Made by a program: the position numbers and the translations under genes. Below the pieces are notes generated by a model, which was not told the DNA's origin, made no database searches, and was given only the letters and a program-made list of their open reading frames with translations. A DNA stretch of 64,000 bases, taken from Utricularia gibba. Taxonomy: Eukaryota; Plantae; Magnoliophyta. How positions within the stretch are numbered: position 1 is the first letter of the stretch; each line of letters opens with the position of its first letter. The stretch is taken from contig NEEC01000009.1 of NCBI GenBank assembly GCA_002189035.1, positions 1 through 64,000 of the forward strand. Reading direction: 5' to 3'. Positions 1 through 27,228 of this stretch are shown here, one piece after another.

Positions 1-3000
1 CATTTAGTTGCTATGATACTTCTGATTCTTGATGCACCATTCCCGTATACCATGTCTCTAGTGGCTATTTGATTCTTTTGCCTTGTATGTTGTTCGCATC
101 AATTTCGAGAACATGAAGCACATTATTAAATGCAGTCACCACGGAATGCCACGTGAGACACTTTTCGTTGTGGCTTTTTTTAATATGTCCACAGTTATCG
201 GACAAACGTAACTCCAAATTATAATACTTGGAGCTCGAAAAGGGCTTCCCAACACTGTGCTATGAAGAGCAAGGATCTGCATGTTATGCAAGAGGTGCTT
301 CGCGGACCAGGATGTGCGACGTAGTCATTTCATTGCGCATCATCATTCGGGGTGCATCCTAAAAATCACACGTGCACGGGATTCATTAAAAAAAATATTT
401 ACGCATATCCAGAGTGTATAACAGTGTTGGGATAAGTGATGCCACGAAATTCATGATGTAGCATGTGACTTTTTTCCAACTTGATCGCATAGTAGATGAA
501 TTCTGACACCATATGTTTTGGCTTTTGATTGATGCATTTAGTTGCTATGATACTTCTGATTCTTGATGCACCATTCCCGTATACCATGTCTCTAGTGGCT
601 ATTTGATTCTTTGCCTTGTATGTTGTTCGCATCAATTTCGAGAACATGAAGCACATTATTAAATGCAATCACCACGGAATGCCACGTGAGACACTTTTCG
701 TTGTGGCTTGTTTTTAATATGTCCACAGTTATCGGACAAACGTAACTCCAAATTATAATACTTGGAGCTCGAAAAGGGCTTCCCAACACTGTGCTATGAA
801 GAGCAAGGATCTGCATGTTATGCAAGAGGTGCTTCGCGGACCAGGATGTGCGACGTAGTCATTTCATTGCGCATCATCATTCGGGGTGCATCCTAAAAAT
901 CACACGTGCACGGGATTCATTAAAAATAAATATTTACGCATATCCAGAGTGTATAACAGTGTTGGGATAAGTGATGCACGAAATTCATGATGTAGCATGT
1001 GACTTTTTTCCAACTTGATCGCATAGTAGATGAATTCTGACACCATATGTTTTGGCTTTTGATTGATGCATTTAGTTGCTATGATACTTCTGATTCTTGA
1101 TGCACCATTCCCGTATACCATGTCTCTAGTGGCTATTTGATTCTTTTGCCTTGTATGTTGTTCGCATCAATTTCGAGAACATGAAGCACATTATTAAATG
1201 CAATCACCACGGAATGCCACGTGAGACACTTTTCGTTGTGGCTTGTTTTTAATATGTCCACAGTTATCGGACAAACGTAACTCCAAATTATAATACTTGG
1301 AGCTCGAAAAGGGCTTCCCAACACTGTGCTATGAAGAGCAAGGATCTGCATGTTATGCAAGAGGTGCTTCGCGGACCAGGATGTGCGACGTAGTCATTTC
1401 ATTGCGCATCATCATTCGGGGTGCATCCTAAAAATCACACGTGCACGGATTCATTAAAAATAAATATTTACGCATATCCAGAGTGTATAACAGTGTTGGG
1501 ATAAGTGATGCCACGAAATTCATGATGTAGCATGTGACTTTTTTCCAACTTGATCGCATAGTAGATGAATTCTGACACCATATGTTTTGGCTTTTGATTG
1601 ATGCATTTAGTTGCTATGATACTTCTGATTCTTGATGCACCATTCCCGTATACCATGTCTCTAGTGGCTATTTGATTCTTTTGCCTTGTATGTTGTTCGC
1701 ATCAATTTCGAGAACATGAAGCACATTATTAAATGCAGTCACCACGGAATGCCACGTGAGACACTTTTCGTTGTGGCTTGTTTTTAATATGTCCACAGTT
1801 ATCGGACAAACGTAACTCCAAATTATAATACTTGGAGCTCGAAAAGGGCTTCCCAACACTGTGCTATGAAGAGCAAGGATCTGCATGTTATGCAAGAGGT
1901 GCTTCGCGCGGACCAGGATGTGCGACGTAGTCATTTCATTGCGCATCATCATTCGGGTGCATCCTAAAAATCACACGTGCACGGGATTCATTAAAAATAA
2001 ATATTTACGCATATCCAGAGTGTATAACAGTGTTGGGATAAGTGATGCCACGAAATTCATGATGTAGCATGTGACTTTTTTCCAACTTGATCGCATAGTA
2101 GATGAATTCTGACACCATATGTTTTGGCTTTTGATTGATGCATTTAGTTGCTATGATACTTCTGATTCTTGATGCACCATTCCCGTATACCATGTCTCTA
2201 GTGGCTATTTGATTCTTTTGCCTTGTATGTTGTTCGCATCAATTTCGAGAACATGAAGCACATTATTAAATGCAGTCACCACGGAATGCCACGTGAGACA
2301 CTTTTCGTTGTGGCTTGTTTTTAATATGTCCACAGTTATCGGACAAACGTAACTCCAAATTATAATACTTGGAGCTCGAAAAGGGCTTCCCAACAGTGTG
2401 CTATGAAGAGCAAGGATCTGCATGTTATGCAAGAGGTGCTTCGCGGACCAGGATGTGCGACGTAGTCATTTCATTGCGCATCATCATTCGGGGGTGCATC
2501 CTAAAAATCACACGTGCACGGGATTCATTAAAAATAAATATTTACGCATATCCAGAGTGTATAACAGTGTTGGGATAAGTGATGCCACGAAATTCATGAT
2601 GTAGCATGTGACTTTTTTCCAACTTGATCGCATAGTAGATGAATTCTGACACCATATGTTTTGGCTTTTGATTGATGCATTTAGTTGCTATGATACTTCT
2701 GATTCTTGATGCACCATTCCCGTATACCATGTCTCTAGTGGCTATTTGATTCTTTTGCCTTGTATGTTGTTCGCATCAATTTCGAGAACATGAAGCACAT
2801 TTTTAAATGCATCACCACGGAATGCCACGTGAGACACTTTTCGTTGTGGCTTGTTTTTAATATGTCCACAGTTATCGGACAAACGTAACTCCAAATTATA
2901 ATACTTGGAGCTCGAAAAGGGCTTCCCAACAGTGTGCTATGAAGAGCAAGGATCTGCATGTTATGCAAGAGGTGCTTCGCGGACCAGGATGTGCGACGTA

Positions 3001-6000
3001 GTCATTTCATTGCGCATCATCATTCGGGGTGCATCCTAAAAATCACACGTGCACCGGATTCATTAAAAATAAATATTTACGCATATCCAGAGTGTATAAC
3101 AGTGTTGGGATAAGTGATGCCACGAAATTCATGATGTAGCATGTGACTTTTTTCCAACTTGATCGCATAGTAGATGAATTCTGACACCATATGTTTTGGC
3201 TTTTGATTGATGCATTTAGTTGCTATGATACTTCTGATTCTTGATGCACCATTCCCGTATACCATGTCTCTAGTGGCTATTTGATTCTTTTGCCTTGTAT
3301 GTTGTTCGCATCAATTTCGAGAACATGAAGCACATTATTAAATGCAATCACCACGGAATGCCACGTGAGACACTTTTCGTTGTGGCTTGTTTTTAATATG
3401 TCCACAGTTATCGGACAAACGTAACTCCAAATTATAATACTTGGAGCTCGAAAAGGGCTTCCCAACAGTGTGCTATGAAGAGCAAGGATCTGCATGTTAT
3501 GCAAGAGGTGCTTCGCGGACCAGGATGTGCGACGTAGTCATTTCATTGCGCATCATCATTCGGGGTGCATCCTAAAAATCACACGTGCACGGGATTCATT
3601 AAAAATAAATATTTACGCATATCCAGAGTGTATAACAGTGTTGGGATAAGTGATGCCACGAAATTCATGATGTAGCATGTGACTTTTTTCCAACTTGATC
3701 GCATAGTAGATGAATTCTGACACCATATGTTTTGGCTTTTGATTGATGCATTTAGTTGCTATGATACTTCTGATTCTTGATGCACCATTCCCGTATACCA
3801 TGTCTCTAGTGGCTATTTGATTCTTTTGCCTTGTATGTTGTTCGCATCAATTTCGAGAACATGAAGCACATTATTAAATGCAGTCACCACGGAATGCCAC
3901 GTGAGACACTTTTCGTTGTGGCTTGTTTTTAATATGTCCACAGTTATCGGACAAACGTAACTCCAAATTATAATACTTGGAGCTCGAAAAGGGCTTCCCA
4001 ACACTGTGCTATGAAGAGCAAGGATCTGCATGTTATGCAAGAGGTGCTTCGCGGACCAGGATGTGCGACGTAGTCATTTCATTGCGCATCATCATTCGGG
4101 GTGCATCCTAAAAATCACACGTGCACGGGATTCATTAAAAATAAATATTTACGCATATCCAGAGTGTATAACAGTGTTGGGATAAGTGATGCCACGAAAT
4201 TCATGATGTAGCATGTGACTTTTTTCCAACTTGATCGCATAGTAGATGAATTCTGACACCATATGTTTTGGCTTTGATTGATGCATTTAGTTGCTATGAT
4301 ACTTCTGATTTTGATGCACCATTCCCGTATACCATGTCTCTAGTGGCTATTTGATTCTTTTGCCTTGTATGTTGTTCGCATCAATTTCGAGAACATGAAG
4401 CACATTATTAAATGCAATCACCACGGAATGCACGTGAGACACTTTTCGTTGTGGCTTGTTTTTAATATGTCCACAGTTATCGGGACAAACGTAACTCCAA
4501 ATTATAATACTTGGAGCTCGAAAAGGGCTTCCCAACACTGTGCTATGAAGAGCAAGGATCTGCATGTTATGCAAGAGGTGCTTCGCGGACCAGGATGTGC
4601 GACGTAGTCATTTCATTGCGCATCATCATTCGGGGTGCATCCTAAAAATCACACGTGCACGGATTCATTAAAAATAAATATTTACGCATATCCAGAGTGT
4701 ATAACAGTGTTGGGATAAGTGATGCCACGAAATTCATGATGTAGCATGTGACTTTTTTCCAACTTGATCGCATAGTAGATGAATTCTGACACCATATGTT
4801 TTGGCTTTTGATTGATGCATTTAGTTGCTATGATACTTCTGATTCTTGATGCACCATTCCCGTATACCATGTCTCTAGTGGCTATTTGATTCTTTTGCCT
4901 TGTATGTTGTTCGCATCAATTTCGAGAACATGAAGCACATTATTAAATGCAGTCACCACGGAATGCCACGTGAGACACTTTTCGTTGTGGCTTGTTTTTA
5001 ATATGTCCACAGTTATCGGACAAACGTAACTCCAAATTATAATACTTGGAGCTCGAAGGCTTCCCAACAGTGTGCTATGAAGAGCAAGGATCTGCATGTT
5101 ATGCAAGAGGTGCTTCGCGGACCAGGATGTGCGACGTAGTCATTTCATTGCGCATCATCATTCGGGGTGCATCCTAAAAATCACACGTGCACGGATTCAT
5201 TAAAAATAAATATTTACGCATATCCAGAGTGTATAACAGTGTTGGGATAAGTGATGCCACGAAATTCATGATGTAGCATGTGACTTTTTTCCAACTTGAT
5301 CGCATAGTAGATGAATTCTGACACCATATGTTTTGGCTTTTGATTGATGCATTTAGTTGCTATGATACTTCTGATTCTTGATGCACCATTCCCGTATACC
5401 ATGTCTCTAGTGGCTATTTGATTCTTTTGCCTTGTATGTTGTTCGCATCAATTTCGAGAACATGAAGCACATTATTAAATGCAATCACCACGGAATGCCA
5501 CGTGAGACACTTTTCGTTGTGGCTTGTTTTTAATATGTCCACAGTTATCGGACAAACGTAACTCCAAATTATAATACTTGGAGCTCGAAAAGGGCTTCCC
5601 AACACTGTGCTATGAAGAGCAAGGATCTGCATGTTATGCAAGAGGTGCTTCGCGGACCAGGATGTGCGACGTAGTCATTTCATTGCGCATCATCATTCGG
5701 GGTGCATCCTAAAAATCACACGTGCACGGGATTCATTAAAAATAAATATTTACGCATATCCAGAGTGTATAACAGTGTTGGGATAAGTGATGCCACGAAA
5801 TTCATGATGTAGCATGTGACTTTTTTCCAACTTGATCGCATAGTAGATGAATTCTGACACCATATGTTTTGGCTTTTGATTGATTCATTTAGTTGCTATG
5901 ATACTTCTGATTCTTGATGCACCATTCCCGTATACCATGTCTCTAGTGGCTATTTGATTCTTTTGCCTTGTATGTTGTTCGCATCAATTTCGAGAACATG

Positions 6001-9000
6001 AAGCACATTATTAAATGCAATCACCACGGAATGCCACGTGAGACACTTTTCGTTGTGGCTTGTTTTTAATATGTCCACAGTTATCGGACAAACGTAACTC
6101 CAAATTATAATACTTGGAGCTCGAAAAGGGCTTCCCAACACTGTGCTATGAAGAGCAAGGATCTGCATGTTATGCAAGAGGTGCTTCGCGGACCAGGATG
6201 TGCGACGTAGTCATTTCATTGCGCATCATCATTCGGGGTGCATCCTAAAAATCACACGTGCACGGATTCATAAAAATAAATATTTACGCATATCCAGAGT
6301 GTATATAACAGTGTTGGGATAAGTGATGCCACGAAATTCATGATGTAGCATGTGACTTTTTTCCAACTTGATCGCATAGTAGATGAATTCTGACACCATA
6401 TGTTTTGGCTTTTGATTGATTCATTTAGTTGCTATGATACTTCTGATTCTTGATGCACCATTCCCGTATACCATGTCTCTAGTGGCTATTTGATTCTTTT
6501 GCCTTGTATGTTGTTCGCATCAATTTCGAGAACATGAAGCACATTATTAAATGCATCACCACGGAATGCCACGTGAGACACTTTTCGTTGGCTTGTTTTT
6601 AATATGTCCACAGTTATCGGACAAACGTAACTCCAAATTATAATACTTGGAGCTCGAAAAGGGCTTCCCAACAGTGTGCTATGAAGAGCAAGGATCTGCA
6701 TGTTATGCAAGAGGTGCTTCGCGGACAGGATGTGCGACGTAGTCATTTCATTGCGCATCATCATTCGGGGTGCATCCTAAAAATCACACGTGCACGGGAT
6801 TCATTAAAAATAAATATTTACGCATATCCAGAGTGTATAACAGTGTTGGGATAAGTGATGCCACGAAATTCATGATGTAGCATGTGACTTTTTTCCAACT
6901 TGATCGCATAGTAGATGAATTCTGACACCATATGTTTTGGCTTTTGATTGATGCATTTAGTTGCTATGATACTTCTGATTCTTGATGCACCATTCCCGTA
7001 TACCATGTCTCTAGTGGCTATTTGATTCTTTTGCCTTGTATGTTGTTCGCATCAATTTCGAGAACATGAAGCACATTATTAAATGCAATCACCACGGAAT
7101 GCCACGTGAGACACTTTTCGTTGTGGCTTGTTTTTAATATGTCCACAGTTATCGGACAAACGTAACTCCAAATTATAATACTTGGAGCTCGAAAAGGGCT
7201 TCCCAACAGTGTGCTATGAAGAGCAAGGATCTGCATGTTATGCAAGAGGTGCTTCGCGGACCAGGATGTGCGACGTAGTCATTTCATTGCGCATCATCAT
7301 TCGGGGTGCATCCTAAAAATCACACGTGCACGGGATTCATTAAAAATAAATATTTACGCATATCCAGAGTGTATAACAGTGTTGGGATAAGTGATGCCAC
7401 GAAATTCATGATGTAGCATGTGACTTTTTCCAACTTGATCGCATAGTAGATGAATTCTGACACCATATGTTTTGGCTTTTGATTGATTCATTTAGTTGCT
7501 ATGATACTTCTGATTCTTGATGCACCATTCCCGTATACCATGTCTCTAGTGGCTATTTGATTCTTTTGCCTTGTATGTTGTTCGCATCAATTTCGAGAAC
7601 ATGAAGCACATTATTAAATGCAATCACCACGGAATGCCACGTGAGACACTTTTCGTTGTGGCTTTTTTTAATATGTCCACAGTTATCGGACAAACGTAAC
7701 TCCAAATTATAATACTTGGAGCTCGAAAAGGGCTTCCCAACAGTGTGCTATGAAGAGCAAGGATCTGCATGTTATGCAAGAGGTGCTTCGCGGACCAGGA
7801 TGTGCGACGTAGTCATTTCATTGCGCATCATCATTCGGGGTGCATCCTAAAAATCACACGTGCACCGGATTCATTAAAAATAAATATTTACGCATATCCA
7901 GAGTGTATAACAGTGTTGGGATAAGTGATGCCACGAAATTCATGATGTAGCATGTGACTTTTTTCCAACTTGATCGCATAGTAGATGAATTCTGACACCA
8001 TATGTTTTGGCTTTTGATTGATGCATTTAGTTGCTATGATACTTCTGATTCTTGATGCACCATTCCCGTATACCATGTCTCTAGTGGCTATTTGATTCTT
8101 TTGCCTTGTATGTTGTTCGCATCAATTTCGAGAACATGAAGCACATTATTAAATGCAATCACCACGGAATGCCACGTGAGACACTTTTCGTTGTGGCTTG
8201 TTTTTAATATGTCCACAGTTATCGGACAAACGTAACTCCAAATTATAATACTTGGAGCTCGAAAAGGGCTTCCCAACACTGTGCTATGAAGAGCAAGGAT
8301 CTGCATGTTATGCAAGAGGTGCTTCGCGGACCAGGATGTGCGACGTAGTCATTTCATTGCGCATCATCATTCGGGGTGCATCCTAAAAATCACACGTGCA
8401 CGGGATTCATTAAAAATAAATATTTACGCATATCCAGAGTGTATAACAGTGTTGGGATAAGTGATGCCACGAAATTCATGATGTAGCATGTGACTTTTTT
8501 CCAACTTGATCGCATAGTAGATGAATTCTGACACCATATGTTTTGGCTTTTGATTGATGCATTTAGTTGCTATGATACTTCTGATTCTTGATGCACCATT
8601 CCGTATACCATGTCTCTAGTGGCTATTTGATTCTTTTGCCTTGTATGTTGTTCGCATCAATTTCGAGAACATGAAGCACATTATTAAATGCAATCACCAC
8701 GGAATGCCACGTGAGACACTTTTCGTTGTGGCTTGTTTTTAATATGTCCACAGTTATCGGACAAACGTAACTCCAAATTATAATACTTGGAGCTCGAAAA
8801 GGGCTTCCAACACTGTGCTATGAAGAGCAAGGATCTGCATGTTATGCAAGAGGTGCTTCGCGGACCAGGATGTGCGACGTAGTCATTTCATTGCGCATCA
8901 TCATTCGGGGTGCATCCTAAAAATCACACGTGCACGGGATTCATTAAAAATAAATATTTACGCATATCCAGAGTGTATAACAGTGTTGGGATAAGTGATG

Positions 9001-12000
9001 CCACGAAATTCATGATGTAGCATGTGACTTTTTTCCAACTTGATCGCATAGTAGATGAATTCTGACACCATATGTTTTGGCTTTTGATTGATGCATTTAG
9101 TTGCTATGATACTTCTGATTCTTGATGCACCATTCCCGTATACCATGTCTCTAGTGGCTATTTGATTCTTTTGCCTTGTATGTTGTTCGCATCAATTTCG
9201 AGAACATGAAGCACATTATTAAATGCAATCACCACGGAATGCCACGTGAGACACTTTTCGTTGTGGCTTGTTTTTAATATGTCCACAGTTATCGGACAAA
9301 CGTAACTCCAAATTATAATACTTGGAGCTCGAAAAGGGCTTCCAACAGTGTGCTATGAAGAGCAAGGATCTGCATGTTATGCAAGAGGTGCTTCGCGGAC
9401 CAGGATGTGCGACGTAGTCATTTCATTGCGCATCATCATTCGGGGTGCATCCTAAAAATCACACGTGCACGGGATTCATTAAAAATAAATATTTACGCAT
9501 ATCCAGAGTGTATAACAGTGTTGGGATAAGTGATGCCACGAAATTCATGATGTAGCATGTGACTTTTTTCCAACTTGATCGCATAGTAGATGAATTCTGA
9601 CACCATATTTTTGGCTTTTGATTGATGCATTTAGTTGCTATGATACTTCTGATTCTTGATGCACCATTCCGTATACCATGTCTCTAGTGGCTATTTGATT
9701 CTTTTGCCTTGTATGTTGTTCGCATCAATTTCGAGAACATGAAGCACATTATTAAATGCAATCACCACGGAATGCCACGTGAGACACTTTTCGTTGTGGC
9801 TTGTTTTTAATATGTCCACAGTTATCGGACAAACGTAACTCCAAATTATAATACTTGGAGCTCGAAAAGGGCTTCCCAACAGTGTGCTATGAAGAGCAAG
9901 GATCTGCATGTTATGCAAGAGGTGCTTCGCGGACCAGGATGTGCGACGTAGTCATTTCATTGCGCATCATCATTCGGGGTGCATCCTAAAAATCACACGT
10001 GCACGGGATTCATTAAAAATAATATTTACGCATATCCAGAGTGTATAACAGTGTTGGGATAAGTGATGCCACGAAATTCATGATGTAGCATGTGACTTTT
10101 TTCCAACTTGATCGCATAGTAGATGAATTCTGACACCATATGTTTTGGCTTTTGATTGATGCATTTAGTTGCTATGATACTTCTGATTCTTGATGCACCA
10201 TTCCCGTATACCATGTCTCTAGTGGCTATTTGATTCTTTTGCCTTGTATGTTGTTCGCATCAATTTCGAGAACATGAAGCACATTATTAAATGCAATCAC
10301 CACGGAATGCCACGTGAGACACTTTTCGTTGTGGCTTGTTTTTAATATGTCCACAGTTATCGGACAAACGTAACTCCAAATTATAATACTTGGAGCTCGA
10401 AAAGGGCTTCCCAACACTGTGCTATGAAGAGCAAGGATCTGCATGTTATGCAAGAGGTGCTTCGCGGACCAGGATGTGCGACGTAGTCATTTCATTGCGC
10501 ATCATCATTCGGGTGCATCCTAAAAATCACACGTGCACGGGATTCATTAAAAATAAATATTTACGCATATCCAGAGTGTATAACAGTGTTGGGATAAGTG
10601 ATGCCACGAAATTCATGATGTAGCATGTGACTTTTTTCCAACTTGATCGCATAGTAGATGAATTCTGACACCATATGTTTTGGCTTTTGATTGATGCATT
10701 TAGTTGCTATGATACTTCTGATTCTTGATGCACCATTCCGTATACCATGTCTCTAGTGGCTATTTGATTCTTTTGCCTTGTATGTTGTTCGCATCAATTT
10801 CGAGAACATGAAGCACATTATTAAATGCAATCACCACGGAATGCCACGTGAGACACTTTTCGTTGTGGCTTGTTTTTAATATGTCCACAGTTATCGGACA
10901 AACGTAACTCCAAATTATAATACTTGGAGCTCGAAAAGGGCTTCCAACACTGTGCTATGAAGAGCAAGGATCTGCATGTTATGCAAGAGGTGCTTCGCGG
11001 ACCAGGATGTGCGACGTAGTCATTTCATTGCGCATCATCATTCGGGGTGCATCCTAAAAATCACACGTGCACGGGATTCATTAAAAATAAATATTTACGC
11101 ATATCCAGAGTGTATAACAGTGTTGGGATAAGTGATGCCACGAAATTCATGATGTAGCATGTGACTTTTTTCCAACTTGATCGCATAGTAGATGAATTCT
11201 GACACCATATTTTTGGCTTTTGATTGATGCATTTAGTTGCTATGATACTTCTGATTCTTGATGCACCATTCCCGTATACCATGTCTCTAGTGGCTATTTG
11301 ATTCTTTTGCCTTGTATGTTGTTCGCATCAATTTCGAGAACATGAAGCACATTATTAAATGCAATCACCACGGAATGCCACGTGAGACACTTTTCGTTGT
11401 GGCTTGTTTTTAATATGTCCACAGTTATCGGACAAACGTAACTCCAAATTATAATACTTGGAGCTCGAAAAGGGCTTCCCAACATGTGCTATGAAGAGCA
11501 AGGATCTGCATGTTATGCAAGAGTGCTTCGCGGACCAGGATGTGCGACGTAGTCATTTCATTGCGCATCATCATTCGGGGTGCATCCTAAAAATCACACG
11601 TGCACGGGATTCATTAAAAATAAATATTTACGCATATCCAGAGTGTATAACAGTGTTGGGATAAGTGATGCCACGAAATTCATGATGTAGCATGTGACTT
11701 TTTTCCAACTTGATCGCATAGTAGATGAATTCTGACACCATATGTTTTGGCTTTTGATTGATGCATTTAGTTGCTATGATACTTCTGATTCTTGATGCAC
11801 CATTCCCGTATACCATGTCTCTAGTGGCTATTTGATTCTTTTGCCTTGTATGTTGTTCGCATCAATTTCGAGAACATGAAGCATTATTAAATGCAATCAC
11901 CACGGAATGCCACGTGAGACACTTTTCGTTGTGGCTTGTTTTTAATATGTCCACAGTTATCGGACAAACGTAACTCCAAATTATAATACTTGGAGCTCGA

Positions 12001-15000
12001 AAAGGGCTTCCCAACAGTGTGCTATGAAGAGCAAGGATCTGCATGTTATGCAAGAGGTGCTTCGCGGACCAGGATGTGCGACGTAGTCATTTCATTGCGC
12101 ATCATCATTCGGGGTGCATCCTAAAAATCACACGTGCACGGGATTCATTAAAAATAAATATTTACGCATATCCAGAGTGTATAACAGTGTTGGGATAAGT
12201 GATGCCACGAAATTCATGATGTAGCATGTGACTTTTTTCCAACTTGATCGCATAGTAGATGAATTCTGACACCATATGTTTTGGCTTTTGATGCATTTAG
12301 TTGCTATGATACTTCTGATTCTTGATGCACCATTCCCGTATACCATGTCTCTAGTGGCTATTTGATTCTTTTGCCTTGTATGTTGTTCGCATCAATTTCG
12401 AGAACATGAAGCACATTATTAAATGCAATCACCACGGAATGCCACGTGAGACACTTTTCGTTGTGGCTTGTTTTTAATATGTCCACAGTTATCGGACAAA
12501 CGTAACTCCAAATTATAATACTTGGAGCTCGAAAAGGGCTTCCCAACAGTGTGCTATGAAGAGCAAGGATCTGCATGTTATGCAAGAGGTGCTTCGCGGA
12601 CAGGATGTGCGACGTAGTCATTTCATTGCGCATCATCATTCGGGGTGCATCCTAAAAATCACACACGTGCACGGATTCATTAAAAATAAATATTTACGCA
12701 TATCCAGAGTGTATAACAGTGTTGGGATAAGTGATGCCACGAAATTCATGATGTAGCATGTGACTTTTTTCCAACTTGATCGCATAGTAGATGAATTCTG
12801 ACACCATATGTTTTGGCTTTTGATTGATGCATTTAGTTGCTATGATACTTCTGATTCTTGATGCACCATTCCCGTATACCATGTCTCTAGTGGCTATTTG
12901 ATTCTTTTGCCTTGTATGTTGTTCGCATCAATTTCGAGAACATGAAGCACATTATTAAATGCAATCACCACGGAATGCCACGTGAGACACTTTTCGTTGT
13001 GGCTTGTTTTTAATATGTCCACAGTTATCGGACAAACGTAACTCCAAATTATAATACTTGGAGCTCGAAAAGGGCTTCCCAACAGTGTGCTATGAAGAGC
13101 AAGGATCTGCATGTTATGCAAGAGGTGCTTCGCGGACCAGGATGTGCGACGTAGTCATTTCATTGCGCATCATCATTCGGGGTGCATCCTAAAAATCACA
13201 CGTGCACGGGATTCATTAAAAATAAATATTTACGCATATCCAGAGTGTATAACAGTGTTGGGATAAGTGATGCCACGAAATTCATGATGTAGCATGTGAC
13301 TTTTTTCCAACTTGATCGCATAGTAGATGAATCTGACACCATATGTTTTGGCTTTTGATTGATGCATTTAGTTGCTATGATACTTCTGATTCTTGATGCA
13401 CCATTCCCGTATACCATGTCTCTAGTGGCTATTTGATTCTTTTGCCTTGTATGTTGTTCGCATCAATTTCGAGAACATGAAGCACATTATTAAATGCAAT
13501 CACCACGGAATGCCACGTGAGACACTTTTCGTTGTGGCTTGTTTTTAATATGTCCACAGTTATCGGACAAACGTAACTCCAAATTATAATACTTGGAGCT
13601 CGAAAAGGGCTTCCCAACAGTGTGCTATGAAGAGCAAGGATCTGCATGTTATGCAAGAGGTGCTTCGCGGACCAGGATGTGCGACGTAGTCATTTCATTG
13701 CGCATCATCATTCGGGGTGCATCCTAAAAATCACACGTGCACGGGATTCATTAAAAATAAATATTTACGCATATCCAGAGTGTATATAACAGTGTTGGGA
13801 TAAGTGATGCCACGAAATTCATGATGTAGCATGTGACTTTTTTCCAACTTGATCGCATAGTAGATGAATTCTGACACCATATGTTTTGGCTTTTGATTGA
13901 TGCATTTAGTTGCTATGATACTTCTGATTCTTGATGCACCATTCCCGTTACCATGTCTCTAGTGGCTATTTGATTCTTTTGCCTTGTATGTTGTTCGCAT
14001 CAATTTCGAGAACATGAAGCACATTATTAAATGCAATCACCACGGAATGCCACGTGAGACACTTTTCGTTGTGGCTTGTTTTTAATATGTCCACAGTTTA
14101 TCGGACAAACGTAACTCCAAATTATAATACTTGGAGCTCGAAAAGGGCTTCCCAACACTGTGCTATGAAGAGCAAGGATCTGCATGTTATGCAAGAGGTG
14201 CTTCGCGGACCAGGATGTGCGACGTAGTCATTTCATTGCGCATCATCATTCGGGGTGCATCCTAAAAATCACACGTGCACGGGATTCATTAAAAATAAAT
14301 ATTTACGCATATCCAGAGTGTATAACAGTGTTGGGATAAGTGATGCCACGAAATTCATGATGTAGCATGTGACTTTTTTCCAACTTGATCGCATAGTAGA
14401 TGAATTCTGACACCATATGTTTTGGCTTTTGATTGATGCATTTAGTTGCTATGATACTTCTGATTCTTGATGCACCATTCCCGTATACCATGTCTCTAGT
14501 GGCTATTTGATTCTTTTGCCTTGTATGTTGTTCGCATCAATTTCGAGAACATGAAGCACATTATTAAATGCAGTCACCACGGAATGCCACGTGAGACACT
14601 TTTCGTTGTGGTTTTTAATATGTCCACAGTTATCGGACAAACGTAACTCCAAATTATAATACTTGGAGCTCGAAAAGGGCTTCCCAACACTGTGCTATGA
14701 AGAGCAAGGATCTGCATGTTATGCAAGAGGTGCTTCGCGGACCAGGATGTGCGACGTAGTCATTTCATTGCGCATCATCATTCGGGGTGCATCCTAAAAA
14801 TCACACGTGCACGGGATTCATTAAAAATAAATATTTACGCATATCCAGAGTGTATAACAGTGTTGGGATAAGTGATGCCACGAAATTCATGATGTAGCAT
14901 GTGACTTTTTTCCAACTTGATCGCATAGTAGATGAATTCTGACACCATATGTTTTGGCTTTGATTGATGCATTTAGTTGCTATGATACTTCTGATTCTTG

Positions 15001-18000
15001 ATGCACCATTCCCGTATACCATGTCTCTAGTGGCTATTTGATTCTTTTGCCTTGTATGTTGTTCGCATCAATTTCGAGAACATGAAGCACATTATTAAAT
15101 GCATCACCACGGAATGCCACGTGAGACACTTTCGTTGTGGCTTGTTTTTAATATGTCCACAGTTATCGGACAAACGTAACTCCAAATTATAATACTTGGA
15201 GCTCGAAAAGGGCTTCCCAACACTGTGCTATGAAGAGCAAGGATCTGCATGTTATGCAAGAGGTGCTTCGCGGACCAGGATGTGCGACGTAGTCATTTCA
15301 TTGCGCATCATCATTCGGGGTGCATCCTAAAAATCACACGTGCACGGGATTCATTAAAAATAAATATTTACGCATATCCAGAGTGTATAACAGTGTTGGG
15401 ATAAGTGATGCCACGAAATTCATGATGTAGCATGTGACTTTTTTCCAACTTGATCGCATAGTAGATGAATTCTGACACCATATTTTGGCTTTGATTGATG
15501 CATTTAGTTGCTATGATACTTCTGATTCTTGATGCACCATTCCCGTATACCATGTCTCTAGTGGCTATTTGATTCTTTTGCCTTGTATGTTGTTCGCATC
15601 AATTTCGAGAACATGAAGCACATTATTAAATGCAATCACCACGGAATGCCACGTGAGACACTTTTCGTTGTGGCTTGTTTTTAATATGTCCACAGTTTAT
15701 CGGACAAACGTAACTCCAAATTATAATACTTGGAGCTCGAAAAGGGCTTCCCAACAGTGTGCTATGAAGAGCAAGGATCTGCATGTTATGCAAGAGGTGC
15801 TTCGCGGACCAGGATGTGCGACGTAGTCATTTCATTGCGCATCATCATTCGGGGTGCATCCTAAAAATCACACGTGCACGGATTCATTAAAATAAATATT
15901 TACGCATATCCAGAGTGTATAACAGTGTTGGGATAAGTGATGCCACGAAATTCATGATGTAGCATGTGACTTTTTTCCAACTTGATCGCATAGTAGATGA
16001 ATTCTGACACCATATGTTTTGGCTTTTGATTGATGCATTTAGTTGCTATGATACTTCTGATTCTTGATGCACCATTCCCGTATACCATGTCTCTAGTGGC
16101 TATTGATTCTTTTGCCTTGTATGTTGTTCGCATCAATTTCGAGAACATGAAGCACATTATTAAATGCAGTCACCACGGAATGCCACGTGAGACACTTTTC
16201 GTTGTGGCTTGTTTTTAATATGTCCACAGTTATCGGACAAACGTAACTCCAAATTATAATACTTGGAGCTCGAAAAGGCTTCCCAACAGTGTGCTATGAA
16301 GAGCAAGGATCTGCATGTTATGCAAGAGGTGCTTCGCGGACCAGGATGTGCGACGTAGTCATTTCATTGCGCATCATCATTCGGGGTGCATCCTAAAAAT
16401 CACACGTGCACGGGATTCATTAAAAATAAATATTTACGCATATCCAGAGTATATAACAGTGTTGGGATAAGTGATGCCACGAAATTCATGATGTAGCATG
16501 TGACTTTTTTCCAACTTGATCGCATAGTAGATGAATTCTGACACCATATGTTTTGCTTTTGATTGATGCATTTAGTTGCTATGATACTTCTGATTCTTGA
16601 TGCACCATTCCCGTACCATGTCTCTAGTGGCTATTTGATTCTTTTGCCTTGTATGTTGTTCGCATCAATTTCGAGAACATGAAGCACATTATTAAATGCA
16701 GTCACCACGGAATGCCACGTGAGACACTTTTCGTTGTGGCTTGTTTTTAATATGTCCACAGTTATCGGACAAACGTAACTCCAAATTATAATACTTGGAG
16801 CTCGAAAAGGGCTTCCCAACAGTGTGCTATGAAGAGCAAGGATCTGCATGTTATGCAAGAGGTGCTTCGCGGACCAGGATGTGCGACGTAGTCATTTCAT
16901 TGCGCATCATCATTCGGGGTGCATCCTAAAAATCACACGTGCACGGGATTCATTAAAAATAAATATTTACGCATATCCAGAGTGTATAACAGTGTTGGGA
17001 TAAGTGATGCCACGAAATTCATGATGTAGCATGTGACTTTTTTCCAACTTGATCGCATAGTAGATGAATTCTGACACCATATGTTTTGGCTTTTGATTGA
17101 TGCATTTAGTTGCTATGATACTTCTGATTCTTGATGCACCATTCCCGTACCATGTCTCTAGTGGCTATTTGATTCTTTTGCCTTGTATGTTGTTCGCATC
17201 AATTTCGAGAACATGAAGCACATTATTAAATGCAGTCACCACGGAATGCCACGTGAGACACTTTTCGTTGTGGCTTTTTTTAATATGTCCACAGTTATCG
17301 GACAAACGTAACTCCAAATTATAATACTTGGAGCTCGAAAAGGGCTTCCCAACACTGTGCTATGAAGAGCAAGGATCTGCATGTTATGCAAGAGGTGCTT
17401 CGCGGACCAGGATGTGCGACGTAGTCATTTCATTGCGCATCATCATTCGGGGTGCATCCTAAAAATCACACGTGCACGGGATTCATTAAAAATAAATATT
17501 TACGCATATCCAGAGTGTATAACAGTGTTGGGATAAGTGATGCCACGAAATTCATGATGTAGCATGTGACTTTTTTCCAACTTGATCGCATAGTAGATGA
17601 ATTCTGACACCATATGTTTTGGCTTTTGATTGATGCATTTAGTTGCTATGATACTTATGATTCTTGATGCACCATTCCCGTATACCATGTCTCTAGTGGC
17701 TATTTGATTCTTTTGCCTTGTATGTTGTTCGCATCAATTTCGAGAACATGAAGCACATTATTAAATGCAATCACCACGGAATGCCACGTGAGACACTTTT
17801 CGTTGTGGCTTGTTTTTAATATGTCCACAGTTATCGGACAAACGTAACTCCAAATTATAATACTTGGAGCTCGAAAAGGGCTTCCCAACAGTGTGCTATG
17901 AAGAGCAAGGATCTGCATGTTATGCAAGAGGTGCTTCGCGGACCAGGATGTGCGACGTAGTCATTTCATTGCGCATCATCATTCGGGGTGCATCCTAAAA

Positions 18001-20580
18001 ATCACACGTGCACCGGATTCATTAAAAATAAATATTTACGCATATCCAGAGTTATATAACAGTGTTGGGATAAGTGATGCCACGAAATTCATGATGTAGC
18101 ATGTGACTTTTTTCCAACTTGATCGCATAGTAGATGAATTCTGACACCATATGTTTTGGCTTTTGATTGATGCATTTAGTTGCTATGATACTTCTGATTC
18201 TTGATGCACCATTCCCGTATACCATGTCTCTAGTGGCTATTTGATTCTTTTGCCTTGTATGTTGTTCGCATCAATTTCGAGAACATGAAGCACATTATTA
18301 AATGCAGCACCAAGGAATGGACACGTAAGACACTTTTCGTTGTGGCTTGTTTTTAATATGTCCACAGTTATCGGACAAACGTAACTCCAAATTATAATAC
18401 TTGGAGCTCGAATAGGGCTTCCCAACAGTGTGCTATGAAGAGCAAGGATCTGCATGTTATGCGAGCGGTGCTTCGCGGACCAGGATGTGCGACATAGTCA
18501 TCTCATTGCGCATCATCATTCGGGGTGCAGCCTAAAAATCACACATGCACGGATTCATTAAAAATAAATATTTACGCATATCCAGATTATATAACAGTGT
18601 TGGGATAAGTGATGACACGAAATTCATGATGTAGCATGTGACTTTTTTCCAACTTGATCGCATAGTAGATGAAGTCTGACACCATATGTTTTGGCTTTTG
18701 ATTGATGTATTTAGTTGCTATGATACTTCTGATTCTTGATGCACCATTCCCGTATACCATGTCTCTAGGGGCTATTTGATTCTTTTGCCTTGTATGTTGT
18801 TCGCATCAATTTCGAGAACATGAAGCACATTATTAAAAGCAGTCACCACGGAATGCCTCGTGAGACACTTTTCGTTGTGGCTTGTTTTTAATATGTCCAG
18901 AGTTATCGGACAAACGTAACTCCAAATTATAATACTTGGAGCTCGAATAGGGCTTCCCAACAGTGTGCTATGAAGAGCAAGGATCTGCATGTTATGCGAG
19001 CGGTGCTTCGCGGACCAGGATGTGCGACGTAGTCATTTCATTGCGCATCATCATTCGGGGGCATCCTAAAAATCACACGTGCACCGAATTCATTAAAAAT
19101 AAATATTTACGCATATCCAGAGTGTATAACAGTGTTGGGATAAGTGATGCCACGAAATTCATGATGTGGCATGTGACTTTTTTCCAACTTGATCGCATAG
19201 TAGATGAAGTCTGACACCATATGTTTTGGCTGTTGATTGATGCATTTAGTTGCTAGGATACTTCTGATTCTTGATGCACCATTCCCGTATACCATGTCTC
19301 TAGTGGCTATTTGATTCTTTTGACTTGTATGTTGTTCGCATGAATTTCGAGAACATGAAGCACATTATTAAATGCAATCACCACGGAATGCCACGTGAGA
19401 CACTTTTCGTTGTGGCTTGTTTTTAATATGTCCACAGTTATCGGACAAACGTAACTCCAAATTATAATACTTGGAGCTCGAATAGGGCTTCCCAACAGTG
19501 TGCTATGAAGAGCAAGGATCTGCATGTTATGCAAGAGGTGCTTCGCGGATTAGGATGTGCGACGTAGTCATTTCATTGCGCATCATCATTCGGGGTGCAT
19601 CCTAAAAATCACACGTGCACGGGATTCATTAAAAATAAATATTTACGCATATCCTGAGTGTATAACAGTGTTGGGATAAGTGATGCCACGAAATTAATGA
19701 TGTAGCATGTGACTTTTTTCCAACTTGATCGCATAGTAGATGAAGTCTGACACCATATGTTTTGGCTTTTGATTGATGCATTTAGTTGCTATGATACTTA
19801 TGATTCTTGATGCACCATTCCCATACACCATGTCTCTAGTGGCTATTTGATTCTTTTGACTTGTATGTTGTTCGCATCAATTTCGAGAACATGAAGCACA
19901 TTATTAAATGCAATCACCACGGAATGCCACGTGAGACACTTTTCGTTGTGGCTTGTTTTTAATATGTCCACAGTTATCGGACAAACGTAACTCCAAATTA
20001 TAATACTTGGAGCTCGAAAAGGGCTTCCCAACAGTGTGCTATGAAGAGCAAGGATCTGCATGTTATGCAAGAGGTGCTTCGCGGACCAGGATGTGCGACA
20101 TAGTCATCTCATTGCGCATCATCATTCGGGGTGCATCCTAAAAATCACACGTGCACCGGATTCATTAAAAATAAATATCTACGCATATCCAGATTATATA
20201 ACAGTGTTGGGATAAGTGATGCCACGAAATTCATGATGTAGCATGTGACTTTTTTCCAACTTGATCGCATAGTAGATGAAGTCTGACACCATATGTTTTG
20301 GCTTTTGATTGATGCATTTAGTTGCTATGATACTTCTGATTCTTGATGCACCATTCCCGTATACCATGTCTCTAGTGGCTATTTGATTCTTTTGCCTTGT
20401 ATGTTGTTTCCATCAATTTCGAGAACAAGAAGCACATTATTAAATGCAGTCACCACGGAATGCCACGTGAGACACCTTTCGTTGTGGCCCTTTTTTAATA
20501 TGTCCACAGTTATCGGAGAAACGTAACTCCAAATTATAATACTTGGAGCTCGAATAGGGCTTACCAACAGTGTGCTATGA
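1..20580. repeat. Homogeneous tandem satellite array, ~536-bp unit, ~38 copies (continues beyond left edge)
   Basis: CATTTAGTTGCTATG recurs at 1, 535, 1069, 1604. Repeated ORF coordinates step by 536 (5414/5950/6486; 19307/19843/20379). One EcoRI (GAATTC) and one SacI (GAGCTC) site in most units. Confidence 0.99.
349..475 (+). pseudogene. Degenerate 5S rRNA-like segment plus T-run terminator (representative; one per unit)
   Basis: GGGTGCATCCTA..CAC..TGCACGGGATTCATTAAAA..TTTACGCAT..CAGTGTTGGGATAAGTGA..GAAATTCATGATGTAGCA is colinear with plant 5S (GGGTGCGATCATA..CAC..TGCACCGGATCCCATCAGAA..GTTAAGCGT..TAGTACTAGGATGGGTGA..GGAAGTCCTCGTGTTGCA). About 57% by hand, ~120 nt, T6 at 470-475. Reference recalled from memory. 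Confidence 0.75.
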
Positions 20581-20612
20581 AGGGCTTACCAACAGTGGGC
20601 TTATCATCATTC

Positions 20613-20738
20613 GGGTGCAGCCTGAAAACCACACGTGCACCGGATTCATTAAAAATTCGAAACTTATGTATAACTGGAGCATAATAGTGTTGGGATAAAT
20701 GATGCCACGAAAGTCATTATGAAAAATGTTACCTTTTT
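20613..20738 (+). pseudogene. Older degenerate 5S rRNA-like segment
   Basis: About 65/119 identities to plant 5S by hand with ~3 gaps. Keeps TGCACCGGAT, TCG, TGG, TAGT, AAGTC. T5 at 20734-20738. Confidence 0.75.
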
Positions 20739-21136
20739 CCAACTTGATCCCTTTGCAAATGAAGTTTGATACCATATGTTGTGGTTGTTGATCGATGCAA
20801 TTTGTTGTTGTGACACTTCTAATTCTTCGTGCACCATACCCATCTACCATTTCTCTTGTGGCTCTTTTATTCTTCAGCCGTGTATGTGGTTTGCATCAAT
20901 TTCGATAATGAAAAACACATATTAAGTGCAGTCACAACGGAATGACACTTGAAGCACTTTTTGTTGTGCCTTCTTTTTTCTATACCCATTTTTATCGGAC
21001 CAACGAAAGTCCAAAGTATAACACGTGGAGCTCAAATAGGGCTTCCCAACGCTGTGCTATGAAGCTGCACGTTTTGGAAGATGCGTGTTGCGGACCGGGA
21101 TGTGTGACGTAGTCACTTCGTTGCGCATCCTCATTC

Positions 21137-21262
21137 GGGTGGCGCATGAAAATCACTCTTGCACCAGATTCATTAAAAATTCGAAATTTATGTATAACTG
21201 GAGTATAATAGTGTTGGGATAAATGATGCCACGAAAGTCATGATGAAAAATGTGACTTTTTT
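21137..21262 (+). pseudogene. Terminal degenerate 5S rRNA-like segment
   Basis: GGGTGGCGCATGAAAATCACTCTTGCACCAGATTCAT...; C at -1, GCGC at -14 to -11; T6 at 21257-21262. Confidence 0.7.
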
Positions 21263-22647
21263 GATTGCATTTCGTGCACAAAGCATCAGGCTTCCAACAG
21301 CAAAACTCACTCTTATGATTCTGTTTGTTGCAATGCTTACATGTATTTGTGGTTGAAGTCCAACAATCTTCACTCATGTGGTGGGATTTATCACAATATC
21401 TACAATTCTGATTACCTATGGTTGAAGTTGGGATTGATGTTGTTGATGGTTTGTTGGCTTGTGACTTCACATCCTTGACATTGTCAGGTGCACCTGAGTT
21501 TATATTCATATTCTGCATTTTGGTGAGTAGCATAGCTTCACCATAAGTTTTCTCAACCTCATAACCATTTCTTAGTTCCAATCTCTTTTGTATAGATTGC
21601 AACTCATTCATGAACTCTCTAAATGTTGGGTCTAGAGCAACAAGATATTCAGGATATAGCTAATGAAGCTTTTCTTCAATAATGTCAAGGATTTTTATTT
21701 CTATCTCAAGTGAACATAGCTTTGGCTCGAATCTTGCTGGTAGGCTAATGATTGCCTTGCTAATCACCTTTTTATCCTCAAGTTTTTCCCCCAATCCTCG
21801 AATCTCTTTCACAAGCTTCGCAGTACGTTCATAATACACTTGTATAGTTTTATTGTCTAACATTTTGGTTTCTCTCAAAATCCTCCAACTTGTTTTTTCA
21901 TATTATCTCTCTGAGTTTGGCATCACCTTCATAATGGGATTTGAGAGTATCCCATATTTCTTTCACTGATTGACAGTCTGCAATATCATTAAACAGATGT
22001 TCAGAGAAGACTTGATATAATGCATCCATTCCTTCATCTTTTCTCTGTTAAAGATATTCAGCTTCCTCTTGCTGTTCTGATGTGGATTTGCTTGTTATTG
22101 TAATAGCCGGTATCTCCCTTTCAACAACATCCCAAATCTTTCTAACTCGAAGGTAGCTACGTATCTTTTTGACCCAACTTCCATACTTAGAAGCATCAAA
22201 CATTGGAGGTCCTCCACCAAATGCCATCATAGCCACCGTTTGACAAGCTTCATGTTGATACTTGGTAAACCACTAAGTAAAAAACATTGAACGGTAAATA
22301 AAATACTGATACGAACACAGGTTTGAGAACCTTACTGTTCTGATACCATGTTGATCCAAGAAAGATACAGTCTTGGTAAGGAACAAAGGGATAATGATTA
22401 TGAGATCATCTTGGATGAAAAACGACTTATGAACAATAAAAATGACTGAAAACCTAATTGACACGTGTTCCTAATAGGGTTTATATATACCCATTACCTA
22501 GTCTACCCAAAAGTGGGCCAGAATCATTTAAAACACACAAAAACCCCAAAAAGTCAAACCCAACATTTTTTAACTGAAACATGACTTTATGACACAAGAT
22601 TAGTGCTTCTAATCACCTTCAAGCTTTGGATTGAAGCTGATCTCCAA
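21263..22647 (-). mobile_element. Ty1/copia 5' fragment (LTR, PBS, broken gag), truncated inside gag
   Basis: LTR 22349-22647, PBS-Met-like rc of GTTCTGATACCA at 22337-22348, gag pieces (PPMFDASKYGSWVKKIRSYLR; CCHC knuckles). Confidence 0.92.
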
Positions 22648-22649
22648 TA

Positions 22650-23035
22650 GACTATTTTTTAGAAAGATGGTTTTCTTTATAGAATAGATAGGTTGTGCAT
22701 TCCTTCTTGTTCCATATGTGATTTGATTGTTAGAGAAGCGCATGGTTGTGGACTAATGAGACATTTTGGTGTTAAGAAGACTCTTGATACTCTAACTCAA
22801 CATTTCTTTTGGCTACACATAAGAAGGGATATTGAAAGAATTTGTGATAGATGTATTTCTTGTAAGAAGGCTAAATCTACCACTGCCCTTAATGGTTTAC
22901 CTCGTTCCCAACCATGGGTGGACATTTCTATAGATTTTGTTTTAGGCTTACCTCGTACCCAAAGGGAAATTCAATTTTTGTTGTTTTGGACAGATTTTCA
23001 AAGATGGCACACTTTATTACTTGTCACAAAACTGA
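22650..23035 (+). mobile_element. CRM-type gypsy integrase fragment
   Basis: [20 protein letters not shown]...CDRCISC (HHCC region) and [14 protein letters not shown]; homologous to 39290-39690. Confidence 0.9.
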
Positions 23036-26821: not shown

Positions 26822-26830
26822 TGTTGAAAT

Positions 26831-27228
26831 ACAGGATCCGATGAACTTCAGCAAAGCCAAACACATAAGAATAAAGTATCATGTCATAAGGAATTTTATA
26901 AAGGAGAAGAAGATTAAAGTGCAGTATGTTGAGAGTGGGAATCAGCTTGCTGATGGGCTCACCAAAAGTTTGAATAGAGTTCAGTTTGAACTAGCAAGGA
27001 AGAACATGAATCTCATAACTATGGAAGACTTTCTCAAGTTGGGAGATCTCAGTCTGGGAGGAAGTGTTGGAGATCAGCCTCAATCCAAAGCTTGAAGGTG
27101 ATTGAAAGCACTAATCTTGTGTCATAATGTTATATTTCAGATAAAAAGGTGTTAAGTTCGAGCATGGAAGTATTGGATTCGAGTTGTTGGGCTTTTTGTG
27201 TGTTTTCAATGATTGTGGCCCACTGTTG
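26831..27228 (+). mobile_element. Inverted copia 3' fragment: RNase H end, PPT, partial LTR
   Basis: KAKHIRIKYHVIR..NQLADGLTK; PPT TGGGAGGAAG; LTR starts TGTTGGAGATCAGCC at 27065 and breaks at ~27228. Confidence 0.9.

Follow-up and report, generated by a model that had tools for sequence, protein, structure and literature searches.

A plant satellite repeat of ~535 bp that probably arose from a decayed 5S rDNA array

The first 21,262 nt of the window (the whole stretch of 64,000 nt of DNA that was analyzed) are made up of 40 tandem units of ~535 bp each, arranged head-to-tail, and each unit carries a segment of ~120 nt that is colinear with plant nuclear 5S rRNA. Since an eroded 5S copy is found in every repeat, the repeat most likely grew from an old 5S gene array. 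Specifically, we propose that an old nuclear 5S rDNA array decayed and that its subsequent amplification and homogenization gave the satellite, a reading to which we assign a probability of roughly 0.6. The gene is still recognizable at the poorly homogenized edge of the array and nearly erased in its interior, and the standard covariance model for 5S rRNA does not detect the copies that remain. Below, we describe the layout of the array, the alignment of the segment with 5S genes and its significance, the pattern of decay, and the rival origins against which the 5S-array origin has to be weighed.

Results

Array layout and homogeneity

The unit length is given by 39 anchor starts between positions 1 and 20315, which are spaced by 530–538 bp. 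This spacing delimits 38 interior units of 530–538 bp (1..20314, plus strand) with 95.7–100% identity to their consensus. The interior units differ by ~1.2% (interior identity ~99%), with the last four differing from the rest by ~3.2%. The start of the window cuts the array, which therefore probably continues upstream. No higher-order periodicity was found in the array, and Tandem Repeats Finder (TRF), when run on the window, did not call it because the longest period considered by TRF is 500.

The array ends in two divergent terminal units, here called edge units. According to sequence comparison with the interior type and edge unit 2, edge unit 1 (20315..20797, plus strand) is a chimera: the interior type accounts for the first 270 nt (95.6%), ~51 nt are deleted upstream of the 5S-like segment, and the segment itself is of the edge type, being 90.5% identical to that of edge unit 2. 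The latter (20798..21262, plus strand) has 81% identity to the interior type and ends in a T-run, where the array abuts a partial copia-type element from the gag side (21260..22650, minus strand), which was identified by alignment to a second copy from 25728 onward and by Pfam hits on neighboring ORFs. The junction lies inside the T-run, and TTT is common to both sides.

One 5S-like segment per unit

The 5S-like segment begins ~350 nt into each unit (350, 884, 1419, and so forth up to 20129) and aligns with 5S with 3–6 gaps and an identity of 60–62% of the aligned columns, equivalent to 55–58% of 119 nt. In an example interior copy at 3563..3683 (plus strand), 5S positions 1–115 fall at 3563–3677, with 69/112 identical and 16 of 34 base pairs retained. 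The best-preserved copy, that of edge unit 1, extends together with its T5 from 20613 to 20738 (plus strand; 5S positions 1–110 at 20613–20721), and contains GCACCGGATTC, TTCGAA, and an A-box to C-box spacing of 18 nt, a distance that is 20 nt in the interior units. The segment of edge unit 2 occupies 21137..21262 (plus strand) including its T6, and 5S positions 18–110 correspond to 21154–21245. There is exactly one 5S-like segment per unit, and the spacer contains neither a second 5S-like piece nor an internal repeat.

Directly 3' of the segment, where the pol III terminator would lie, a run of five or six T residues is present in 40/40 units (T6 at 3684..3689, plus strand, in the example unit). 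Of 107 genes in real plant 5S loci, 85 have a TTTT that begins 0–3 nt past their end. Box C is found as GGATAAGTGA or GGATAAATGA, with GGATTC at the BamHI site; the eroded box C at 3642..3654 (plus strand), GGGATAAGTGATG, agrees at 10 of 13 positions with the box C pattern that PMC7215508 gives for Cassandra/5S. An earlier note on this DNA, made from the sequence alone, had described a homogenized array of ~536-bp units, each with ~120 nt colinear with 5S at 55–57% identity and with few gaps, a T5-6 run at the terminator position, GGATAAGTGA as box C, and GGATTC in place of the BamHI site, all of which agrees with our measurements. The edge of the array retains older states. It had also pointed to a C at -1 and GCGC at -14 to -11. 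These letters are indeed present, and the edge units have C at -1 and GC at -12/-11, but as a promoter signal they are weak, their PWM score ranking in the top 3–33% of random positions depending on unit and register. The weakness of these upstream promoter remnants counts against an origin from a 5S array.

The ~535-bp period falls inside the 290–1010 bp spacing of the real plant 5S arrays that were fetched. It is also compatible with tandem arrays of the retroelement Cassandra (377–537 bp, PMC7215508), which likewise counts against a 5S-array origin. A comparison of the 408-bp spacer with 119 plant 5S loci from metagenomes gave no match, which says little because 5S spacers evolve fast; the spacer may well be a former 5S spacer.

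Significance of the 5S match

The alignment with shuffled controls that the earlier note had suggested was carried out with 214 real plant 5S genes as queries, with reversed queries and real DNA as further controls. The edge units exceed dinucleotide shuffles under every scoring scheme (0 of 500 shuffles reach their score), with z ~4 for plain scoring and z of 11.3 (unit 1) and 9.3 (unit 2) for a transition-aware matrix. For the interior units, the outcome depends on the scoring, with z of 4.7 for the transition-aware matrix, 2.6 for +5/-4, and -0.6 for +1/-1. The transition-aware matrix was picked after inspection of the data, although its null was calibrated under that matrix as well. Under this matrix, the median local scores against the 214 genes are 18.1 (interior), 23.8 (edge unit 1), and 22.0 (edge unit 2), compared to 10.4–11.5 for reversed queries (maximum 16.5) and a maximum of 16.75 for the remaining 43 kb of the window, the real-DNA control; the edge units lie above all 228 real-DNA tiles. 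For 214/214 queries, the signal is present in the forward direction only and disappears when the query is reversed or reverse-complemented.

A search with nhmmer using a plant 5S profile found edge unit 1 with E = 7e-4 when 4.3 kb were searched and 0.021 for the whole window, and edge unit 2 with E of 0.014 and 0.4, respectively, while on the window the interior units gave E ≥ 1.4. The segment of edge unit 1 furthermore matches many real 5S genes in blastn (E = 7.6e-4), and each half of the gene is significant by itself (z of 3.9 each). Where transition-aware scoring is set aside, the homology of the interior units follows from the 81–82% identity between their 5S-like segment and that of the edge units. 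The matches thus support, above chance, that the segment is homologous to the region coding for 5S, strongly for the edge units and directly for the interior units with transition-aware scoring only.

Loss of structure and constraint

A search of the window with Rfam RF00001, also suggested in the earlier note, returned no 5S match at the gathering score of 38 bits (real plant 5S genes score 63–112 bits), and neither did searches of 1–1700 and 20500–21320 at E ≤ 10; the only matches in the Rfam runs were noise matches to snoRNA and miRNA models. The segment keeps 13–16 of 34 canonical pairs, where a real gene has 32 of 34 and ~38% are expected at random, and the three-way junction with helices I–V is unable to pair. 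Its minimum free energy of -21 kcal/mol (z of +0.7, or +0.72 for the interior segment at 3563..3683, and 0.0) is no better than that of shuffles, compared to -44 kcal/mol and z of -1.8 for a real gene. Positions 50–97, from A-box to C-box, are only 52–56% identical to 5S, such that the internal control region (box A, intermediate element, box C) is not intact; for the interior unit and for edge unit 1, positions 1–49 are 61–63% identical. Moreover, segment and spacer have diverged at an equal pace (81.6 vs 80.8% identity). Together, these observations support a non-functional 5S-like copy that evolves without constraint. The earlier note had anticipated the eroded box A, a helix II unable to pair (1–2 of its 7 pairs are kept), many G>A and C>T mismatches, and the failure of rRNA annotators to see the repeat. 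The covariance model is indeed silent even at E ≤ 10.

Age and pattern of decay

The whole unit occurs in tandem in four runs from other organisms, at ~88–97% identity. Nine sites set all four of these runs apart from the interior type, and at 7 of the 9 edge unit 1 shares the base of the runs. These outgroup variants also restore a 5S-like C at 3591 and lack a 2-nt insertion between the boxes. In the comparison with 5S, 41 difference columns are common to the interior and both edge lineages, and most of the decay is therefore older than the present variants. Where interior and edge types differ, one state matches 5S at 9 of 18 sites, no more than chance.

G>A and C>T changes make up 37–51% of the mismatches to 5S, with ~23% expected from composition. 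The earlier note had linked such changes to the decay of methylated repeats, an explanation that three findings leave without support: transitions and transversions are about equally frequent among the differences from 5S, the unit shows no loss of CpG (20 observed vs ~21 expected), and C>T and G>A do not dominate the recent changes within the array.

Alternative origins

Among the rival explanations, an origin from a Cassandra-type retroelement, that is, a tandem element whose LTR contains a 5S-derived domain and whose array has since decayed, is disfavored and in our judgment unlikely. Cassandra does build long tandem arrays with periods in the range given above, and its 5S domain, which has its own terminator, is only 51–59% similar to 5S (PMC12486564). 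The satellite resembles these arrays (Kalendar et al. 2020, PMC7215508; PMC12486564) in having a 5S-like domain and a terminator once per unit, the units of Cassandra measuring 377–537 bp, and a 5S similarity of just 50–60%; it differs from them in that no primer binding site (PBS), polypurine tract (PPT), or LTR termini were found, and in that its promoter region is no better kept than the rest. The methionine-tRNA PBS, TGGTATCAGAGC, does not occur in 1–21262 at up to 2 mismatches, whereas the flanking LTR elements have exact ones. The best PBS-like match is on the minus strand, at 9 of 12 positions, which is chance level, and the ancestral form is no better. In edge unit 1, the minus-strand PBS-like motif reads TGGTATCA; it was considered and rejected, as its older state matches at 9 of 12 positions, a match expected by chance about once per three units. 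Searches for a Cassandra-like PPT and for TG...CA LTR termini or a terminal inverted repeat gave at most 8–9 of 12 matches to published grass motifs, which may not be those of the host, and the sole purine run of at least 9 nt in the unit is the complement of the T-run. Finally, identity to 5S in the 5' half is here flat or higher relative to the A-box to C-box region, while in Cassandra the latter is the better kept part, at 76–80% (PMC12486564). The hallmarks of Cassandra may nevertheless have decayed, and the published figures come from grasses. No Cassandra elements, defined by an exact 5S word and a PBS within 500 nt, were present among the 119 fetched loci.

It is improbable that a single 5S copy, as an orphon or pseudogene, inserted into unrelated sequence and that the composite was then amplified, in which case only the 120 nt would be of 5S origin and the layout would be coincidental. 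The 5S-like segment is the only part of the unit that matches anything 5S-related, and the upstream promoter remnants are weak, as such an event would predict. However, it would leave unaccounted for the T-run at the terminator position, the C at -1 and GC at -12/-11 of the edge units, and a period typical of plant 5S arrays, and there are no poly(A), target-site, or transposable element features to mark an insertion. Nor were tRNA-like features found in the unit.

Chance resemblance between an AT-rich satellite and 5S is very improbable and, for the edge units, largely refuted: although +1/-1 scoring and nhmmer leave the interior units within noise, Rfam gives no 5S match, and the best-working scoring was selected post hoc, the edge units beat every shuffle control and all real-DNA tiles, the 5S queries score forward only, the alignment is full-length, near gapless, and ends at the T-run, and the outgroup variants are closer to 5S both at 3591 and between the boxes.

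Discussion

Descent from a decayed 5S rDNA array would imply the following course of events. To begin with, an old copy of the 5S gene, together with the terminator and probably also the spacer belonging to it, would have become non-functional. The dead copy would have gathered ~40% substitutions, among which GC-to-AT transitions are overrepresented. The decayed unit would then have been amplified and kept uniform, presumably through unequal crossing-over and gene conversion, although the order of decay and amplification may have been different. Homogenization would be efficient inside the array and weak at its edge, which would explain why the last two units retain older bases and why one of them is a recombinant.

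Functional plant 5S arrays (such as loci L003, L021, L063, and L066) share with the satellite the head-to-tail arrangement, a similar unit length, and one gene-length segment per unit followed by a T-run. They differ in that their genes score 63–112 bits with RF00001 and form 32 of 34 pairs, whereas the satellite obtains no score and forms 13–16. Satellites derived from 5S are already on record from a plant as well as from frogs and fish, and the repeat is therefore not a new kind of element. The B chromosome of Plantago lagopus is reported to be enriched in a 5S rDNA-derived satellite (Kumke et al. 2016, as cited in PMC6934454 and PMC12692304), which, like the present repeat, is a plant satellite attributed to 5S rDNA that has expanded into long arrays. 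In the present repeat, the gene part is ~40% diverged and invisible to Rfam, and the repeat adjoins ordinary retrotransposons and is common to several related organisms. In animals, the 5S-related satellites PcP190 of hyloid frogs and 5SHindIII of Hoplias malabaricus (PMC11675491, PMC4201667; Martins 2006 and Vittorazzi 2011, via PMC12692304) are likewise composed of tandem units with a ~120-bp region resembling the 5S transcribed region plus a variable region, and persist across related species. Their units are much shorter (~190 bp in PcP190), and the 5S-like region of PcP190 is described as highly conserved, unlike the segment studied here, which drifts like spacer. On account of its size (528 bp), the khipu satellite of Phaseolus was compared and rejected: by eye, its published units look unrelated, and four 10–17-nt words of our unit occur nowhere in the supplements of the khipu paper. 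Six 15–19-nt words of the unit searched in literature text gave no match.

The array provides a sequence-resolved case of a housekeeping gene array that dies and is recycled into satellite DNA. It also exposes a blind spot of annotation, in that standard tools fail to detect the 5S origin; with no Rfam match, repeat annotation would label the repeat an orphan satellite, and given the ~40% divergence, it would presumably also escape 5S mapping with probes. There is a slim chance that the satellite, with its origin in ribosomal genes, is an overlooked chromosomal landmark of centromeres or pericentromeres, present in arrays of tens of kb next to retrotransposon-rich DNA and shared with related species. 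The putative centromeres of Utricularia gibba are described as being without satellite repeats, at least in the account that PMC8333044 gives of the genome paper. If the DNA is from Utricularia gibba, the repeat bears on this published statement of satellite-free centromeric regions, and the satellite would be a ready target for FISH and ChIP.

Architecture of the satellite array and its border

The satellite occupies positions 1–21262 of the window, where exact-anchor spacing places 39 unit starts between 1 and 20315 at intervals of 530–538 bp, and alignment adds one 5S-colinear segment per unit, as the earlier note had described. Multiple alignment yields a consensus of 536 bp, to which 38 units are 95.7–100% identical. 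The pairwise difference among these interior units is ~1.2%, which bears out the claim that the array is homogenized. Single-base indels account for 78 of the 178 differences among them (window 1–20314), and errors in the long-read consensus, instead of true variation, may explain these indels. The final four interior-type units are ~3.2% different from the others, and no higher-order period was seen when the interior units were compared. Many interior-unit indels fall in homopolymer runs, for example the T-run and an A-run at unit position 390–400. The window start cuts through the array, and no satellite copies were found in the remainder of the window.

The array ends in two divergent units. 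Edge unit 1 (20315–20797) is a chimera of the interior and edge types: over its first 270 nt it follows the interior type (95.6% identity), and its last part, including the 5S-like segment, is 90.5% identical to edge unit 2. It also carries a ~51-nt deletion just upstream of the 5S-like segment, including a local duplication of GGGCTTACCAACAGTG. Edge unit 2 (20798–21262) and the interior type share 81% identity. The downstream end of the array lies within a T-run (21259–21262), where it meets a copia-type fragment in its internal portion, on the gag side; TTT is common to both sides of the junction. This copia-type stretch, which comprises the gag side, the PBS, and part of an LTR, is present in two minus-strand copies, at 21253–22650 and 25728–27800, which are 85–91% similar and ~4.5–5.1 kb apart. 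Because the first copy breaks off precisely at its junction with the satellite, the border is a rearrangement breakpoint, not a clean insertion. Elsewhere the window contains elements of the copia and gypsy types, plus a Transposase_32 ORF. A gypsy-type element at 36263–40482, possibly young, has long uninterrupted reading frames for gag, RT, RNase H, and integrase, and its methionine PBS at 35219–35230 is exact. A copia-type element at 57592–62368 (minus strand) carries a 669-aa ORF for gag, protease, and integrase together with a fragment of RT, and its PBS at 62357–62368 is exact. A 446-aa ORF at 47830–49170 (minus strand) contains the Transposase_32 domain of putative plant transposon proteins.

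Homology of a segment of the repeat unit to 5S rRNA genes

As queries we used 119 loci from metagenome contigs, retrieved by a conserved 18-mer, in which Rfam confirmed full-length 5S genes (63–112 bits); 214 distinct plant-type 5S genes with flanks, extracted from these loci, formed the comparison set. Local alignment to one angiosperm-type gene is colinear in all three kinds of unit, placing 5S positions 1–115 at 3563–3677 in an interior unit, 1–110 at 20613–20721 in edge unit 1, and 18–110 at 21154–21245 in edge unit 2, with 60–62% identity of aligned columns and 3–6 gap columns. Scores were compared with those of 500 dinucleotide-shuffled versions of each unit, searched on both strands. 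For the interior unit, edge unit 1, and edge unit 2, respectively, z was −0.6, 4.0, and 3.2 under +1/−1 scoring, 2.6, 4.4, and 4.1 under +5/−4 scoring, and 4.7, 11.3, and 9.3 under a transition-aware matrix, in which transitions are lightly penalized and the observed score was reached by 0/500 shuffles per unit. The edge units score above shuffles under all three schemes, and the interior-unit match is significant only with the transition-aware matrix.

Other controls agree. Taken as a real-DNA control, 228 tiles of the remaining 43 kb of the window scored 16.75 at most, compared with observed scores of 18.25, 27.25, and 24.25. All 214 forward 5S queries give a signal, with medians of 18.1 (interior), 23.8 (edge unit 1), and 22.0 (edge unit 2), compared with 10.4–11.5 for the 214 reversed queries (maximum 16.5) and 10.2–12.4 for reverse-complemented ones (maximum 15.5–16.5 in the interior unit and edge unit 1, and 21.2 in edge unit 2). 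A profile HMM built from the 214 genes matches edge unit 1 with E=7e-4 in 4.3 kb and 0.021 over the whole window; interior units were not set apart from noise in the window search. Both gene halves of edge unit 1 are separately significant (z 3.9 each), and in blastn searches of all fetched loci the edge units matched 5S genes alone, solely through the 5S-like segment. The alignments, together with the shuffle, real-DNA, reversed-query, and profile controls, show that the segment is homologous to 5S, as the earlier note had proposed. Since the interior units are heavily eroded, their 5S status draws in part on how closely this segment matches that of the edge units (81–82% identity).

Loss of gene function and pattern of decay

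Judged by its sequence, the 5S-like gene copy is dead. When the Rfam consensus structure is mapped onto the segments, 13–16 of 34 pairs are possible, compared with 32 in a real gene and ~13 at random, and helix II keeps 1–2 of 7. The folding energy of −21 kcal/mol is no lower than that of shuffled sequences (z +0.7 and 0.0); a real 5S gene reaches −44 kcal/mol and folds as a three-way junction. Box C has become GGATAAGTGA or GGATAAATGA and the BamHI site GGATTC, and interior units have 2 additional bases between the boxes. The segment also diverges like the spacer, both between interior and edge types (81.6% versus 80.8% identity) and within the array (0.85% versus 0.76% divergence). The satellite is indeed missed by rRNA annotation: the RF00001 search gave no 5S match at gathering score in the window, and none on short stretches even at E≤10.

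The flanking signals held up in part. A T5–6 run directly follows the 5S-like segment in 40/40 units, and in the fetched loci TTTT begins 0–3 nt past the gene in 85/107 genes. In the edge units, C precedes GGGTG, and G at −12 and C at −11 are present; roughly half of the real loci show the same. Scored by a position-weight matrix, the 30 bases upstream fall in the top 3–33% of random positions, depending on unit and register, and the upstream motifs are therefore counted as present but weak.

The mismatches show a substitution bias. G>A and C>T make up 16–19 of the 35–43 mismatches to 5S (37–51%, versus ~23% expected from the two compositions), and transitions are about as frequent as transversions. 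TpG and CpA are in excess. As CpG is not depleted (20 in the unit versus ~21 expected) and C>T/G>A does not dominate the recent changes within the array, deamination of methylated cytosines is no more than plausible as the cause of the old decay.

Age, spread, and probable concerted evolution

Four runs from other organisms (two DNA, two RNA-labelled) contain contigs with the whole unit and tandem joints, at ~88–97% likeness. At nine listed sites, the interior type differs from all four of these runs; edge unit 1 has the base of the four at 7, and edge unit 2 does so at 5 of 7 covered sites. Older states seen in the other organisms include a 5S-like C at 3591, and one organism lacks the two-base insertion between the boxes. 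Concerted evolution would be expected to leave such a pattern, with new variants spreading in the interior and the edges lagging. Unequal crossing-over and gene conversion would have spread variants through the array, as the interior/edge pattern and the chimeric unit suggest. Interior and both edge lineages have 41 differences from 5S in common, so most of the decay is older than the present variants.

RNA-labelled runs under the Utricularia gibba label contain almost no words of the unit. In two from other organisms (X13 and X16; query 3213–3748), the full unit and a tandem joint occur at low depth on contigs of 355 and 568 nt, ~94–96% alike; these may be DNA carry-over or could reflect read-through transcription. 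The repeat is also present in pond metagenomes. Four fetched loci (L096, L065, L066, and L107) are real plant 5S arrays with many copies bearing scattered substitutions and small deletions, including a 10-nt loss in box C in L065, and are natural examples of 5S copies decaying within an array.

Alternative origins and known systems

The serious rival is a tandem array of a Cassandra-type retroelement, which we rate as doubtful. Cassandra arrays have periods of 377–537 bp (PMC7215508), and the Cassandra 5S domain is 51–59% like 5S and has a terminator (PMC12486564). However, the array lacks a methionine PBS with ≤2 mismatches, whereas the flanking LTR elements have exact ones, and no PPT or LTR termini resembling published Cassandra ones were found in the unit. 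A PBS-like word on the opposite (minus) strand, ~25 nt from the T-run (3714–3725; 20763–20774 in edge unit 1), has the sequence TGGTGTCAGAAT in interior units, while the edge unit and other organisms show TGGTATCAAACT; when the older state is used, its 9/12 match is at chance level. The promoter region is no better kept than the 5′ half, the opposite of Cassandra (PMC12486564). Decay could have wiped out such marks, and the comparison was with published Cassandra features. A similarly improbable alternative is the capture of a single 5S copy in unrelated DNA that was then amplified, which would fit a spacer with no match among the 119 fetched loci. Chance resemblance to 5S is unlikely, being opposed by the shuffle, real-DNA, and reversed-query controls.

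In its core the earlier note's reading is upheld, with a repeat that is 5S-derived, dead as a gene, homogenized, and unseen by annotation; its spacer may likewise descend from a 5S spacer. The satellite is a further case of the already described 5S rDNA-derived satellites, which are known from hyloid frogs (PcP190) and Hoplias among animals (PMC11675491, PMC4201667) and which are cited in PMC6934454 and PMC12692304 for the Plantago lagopus B chromosome. A literature text search found no published prints of this unit, nor any literature on satellites of Utricularia gibba. Passages of one account describe putative centromeres without satellite repeats in this species (PMC8333044), and this published lack lends the repeat some local interest.
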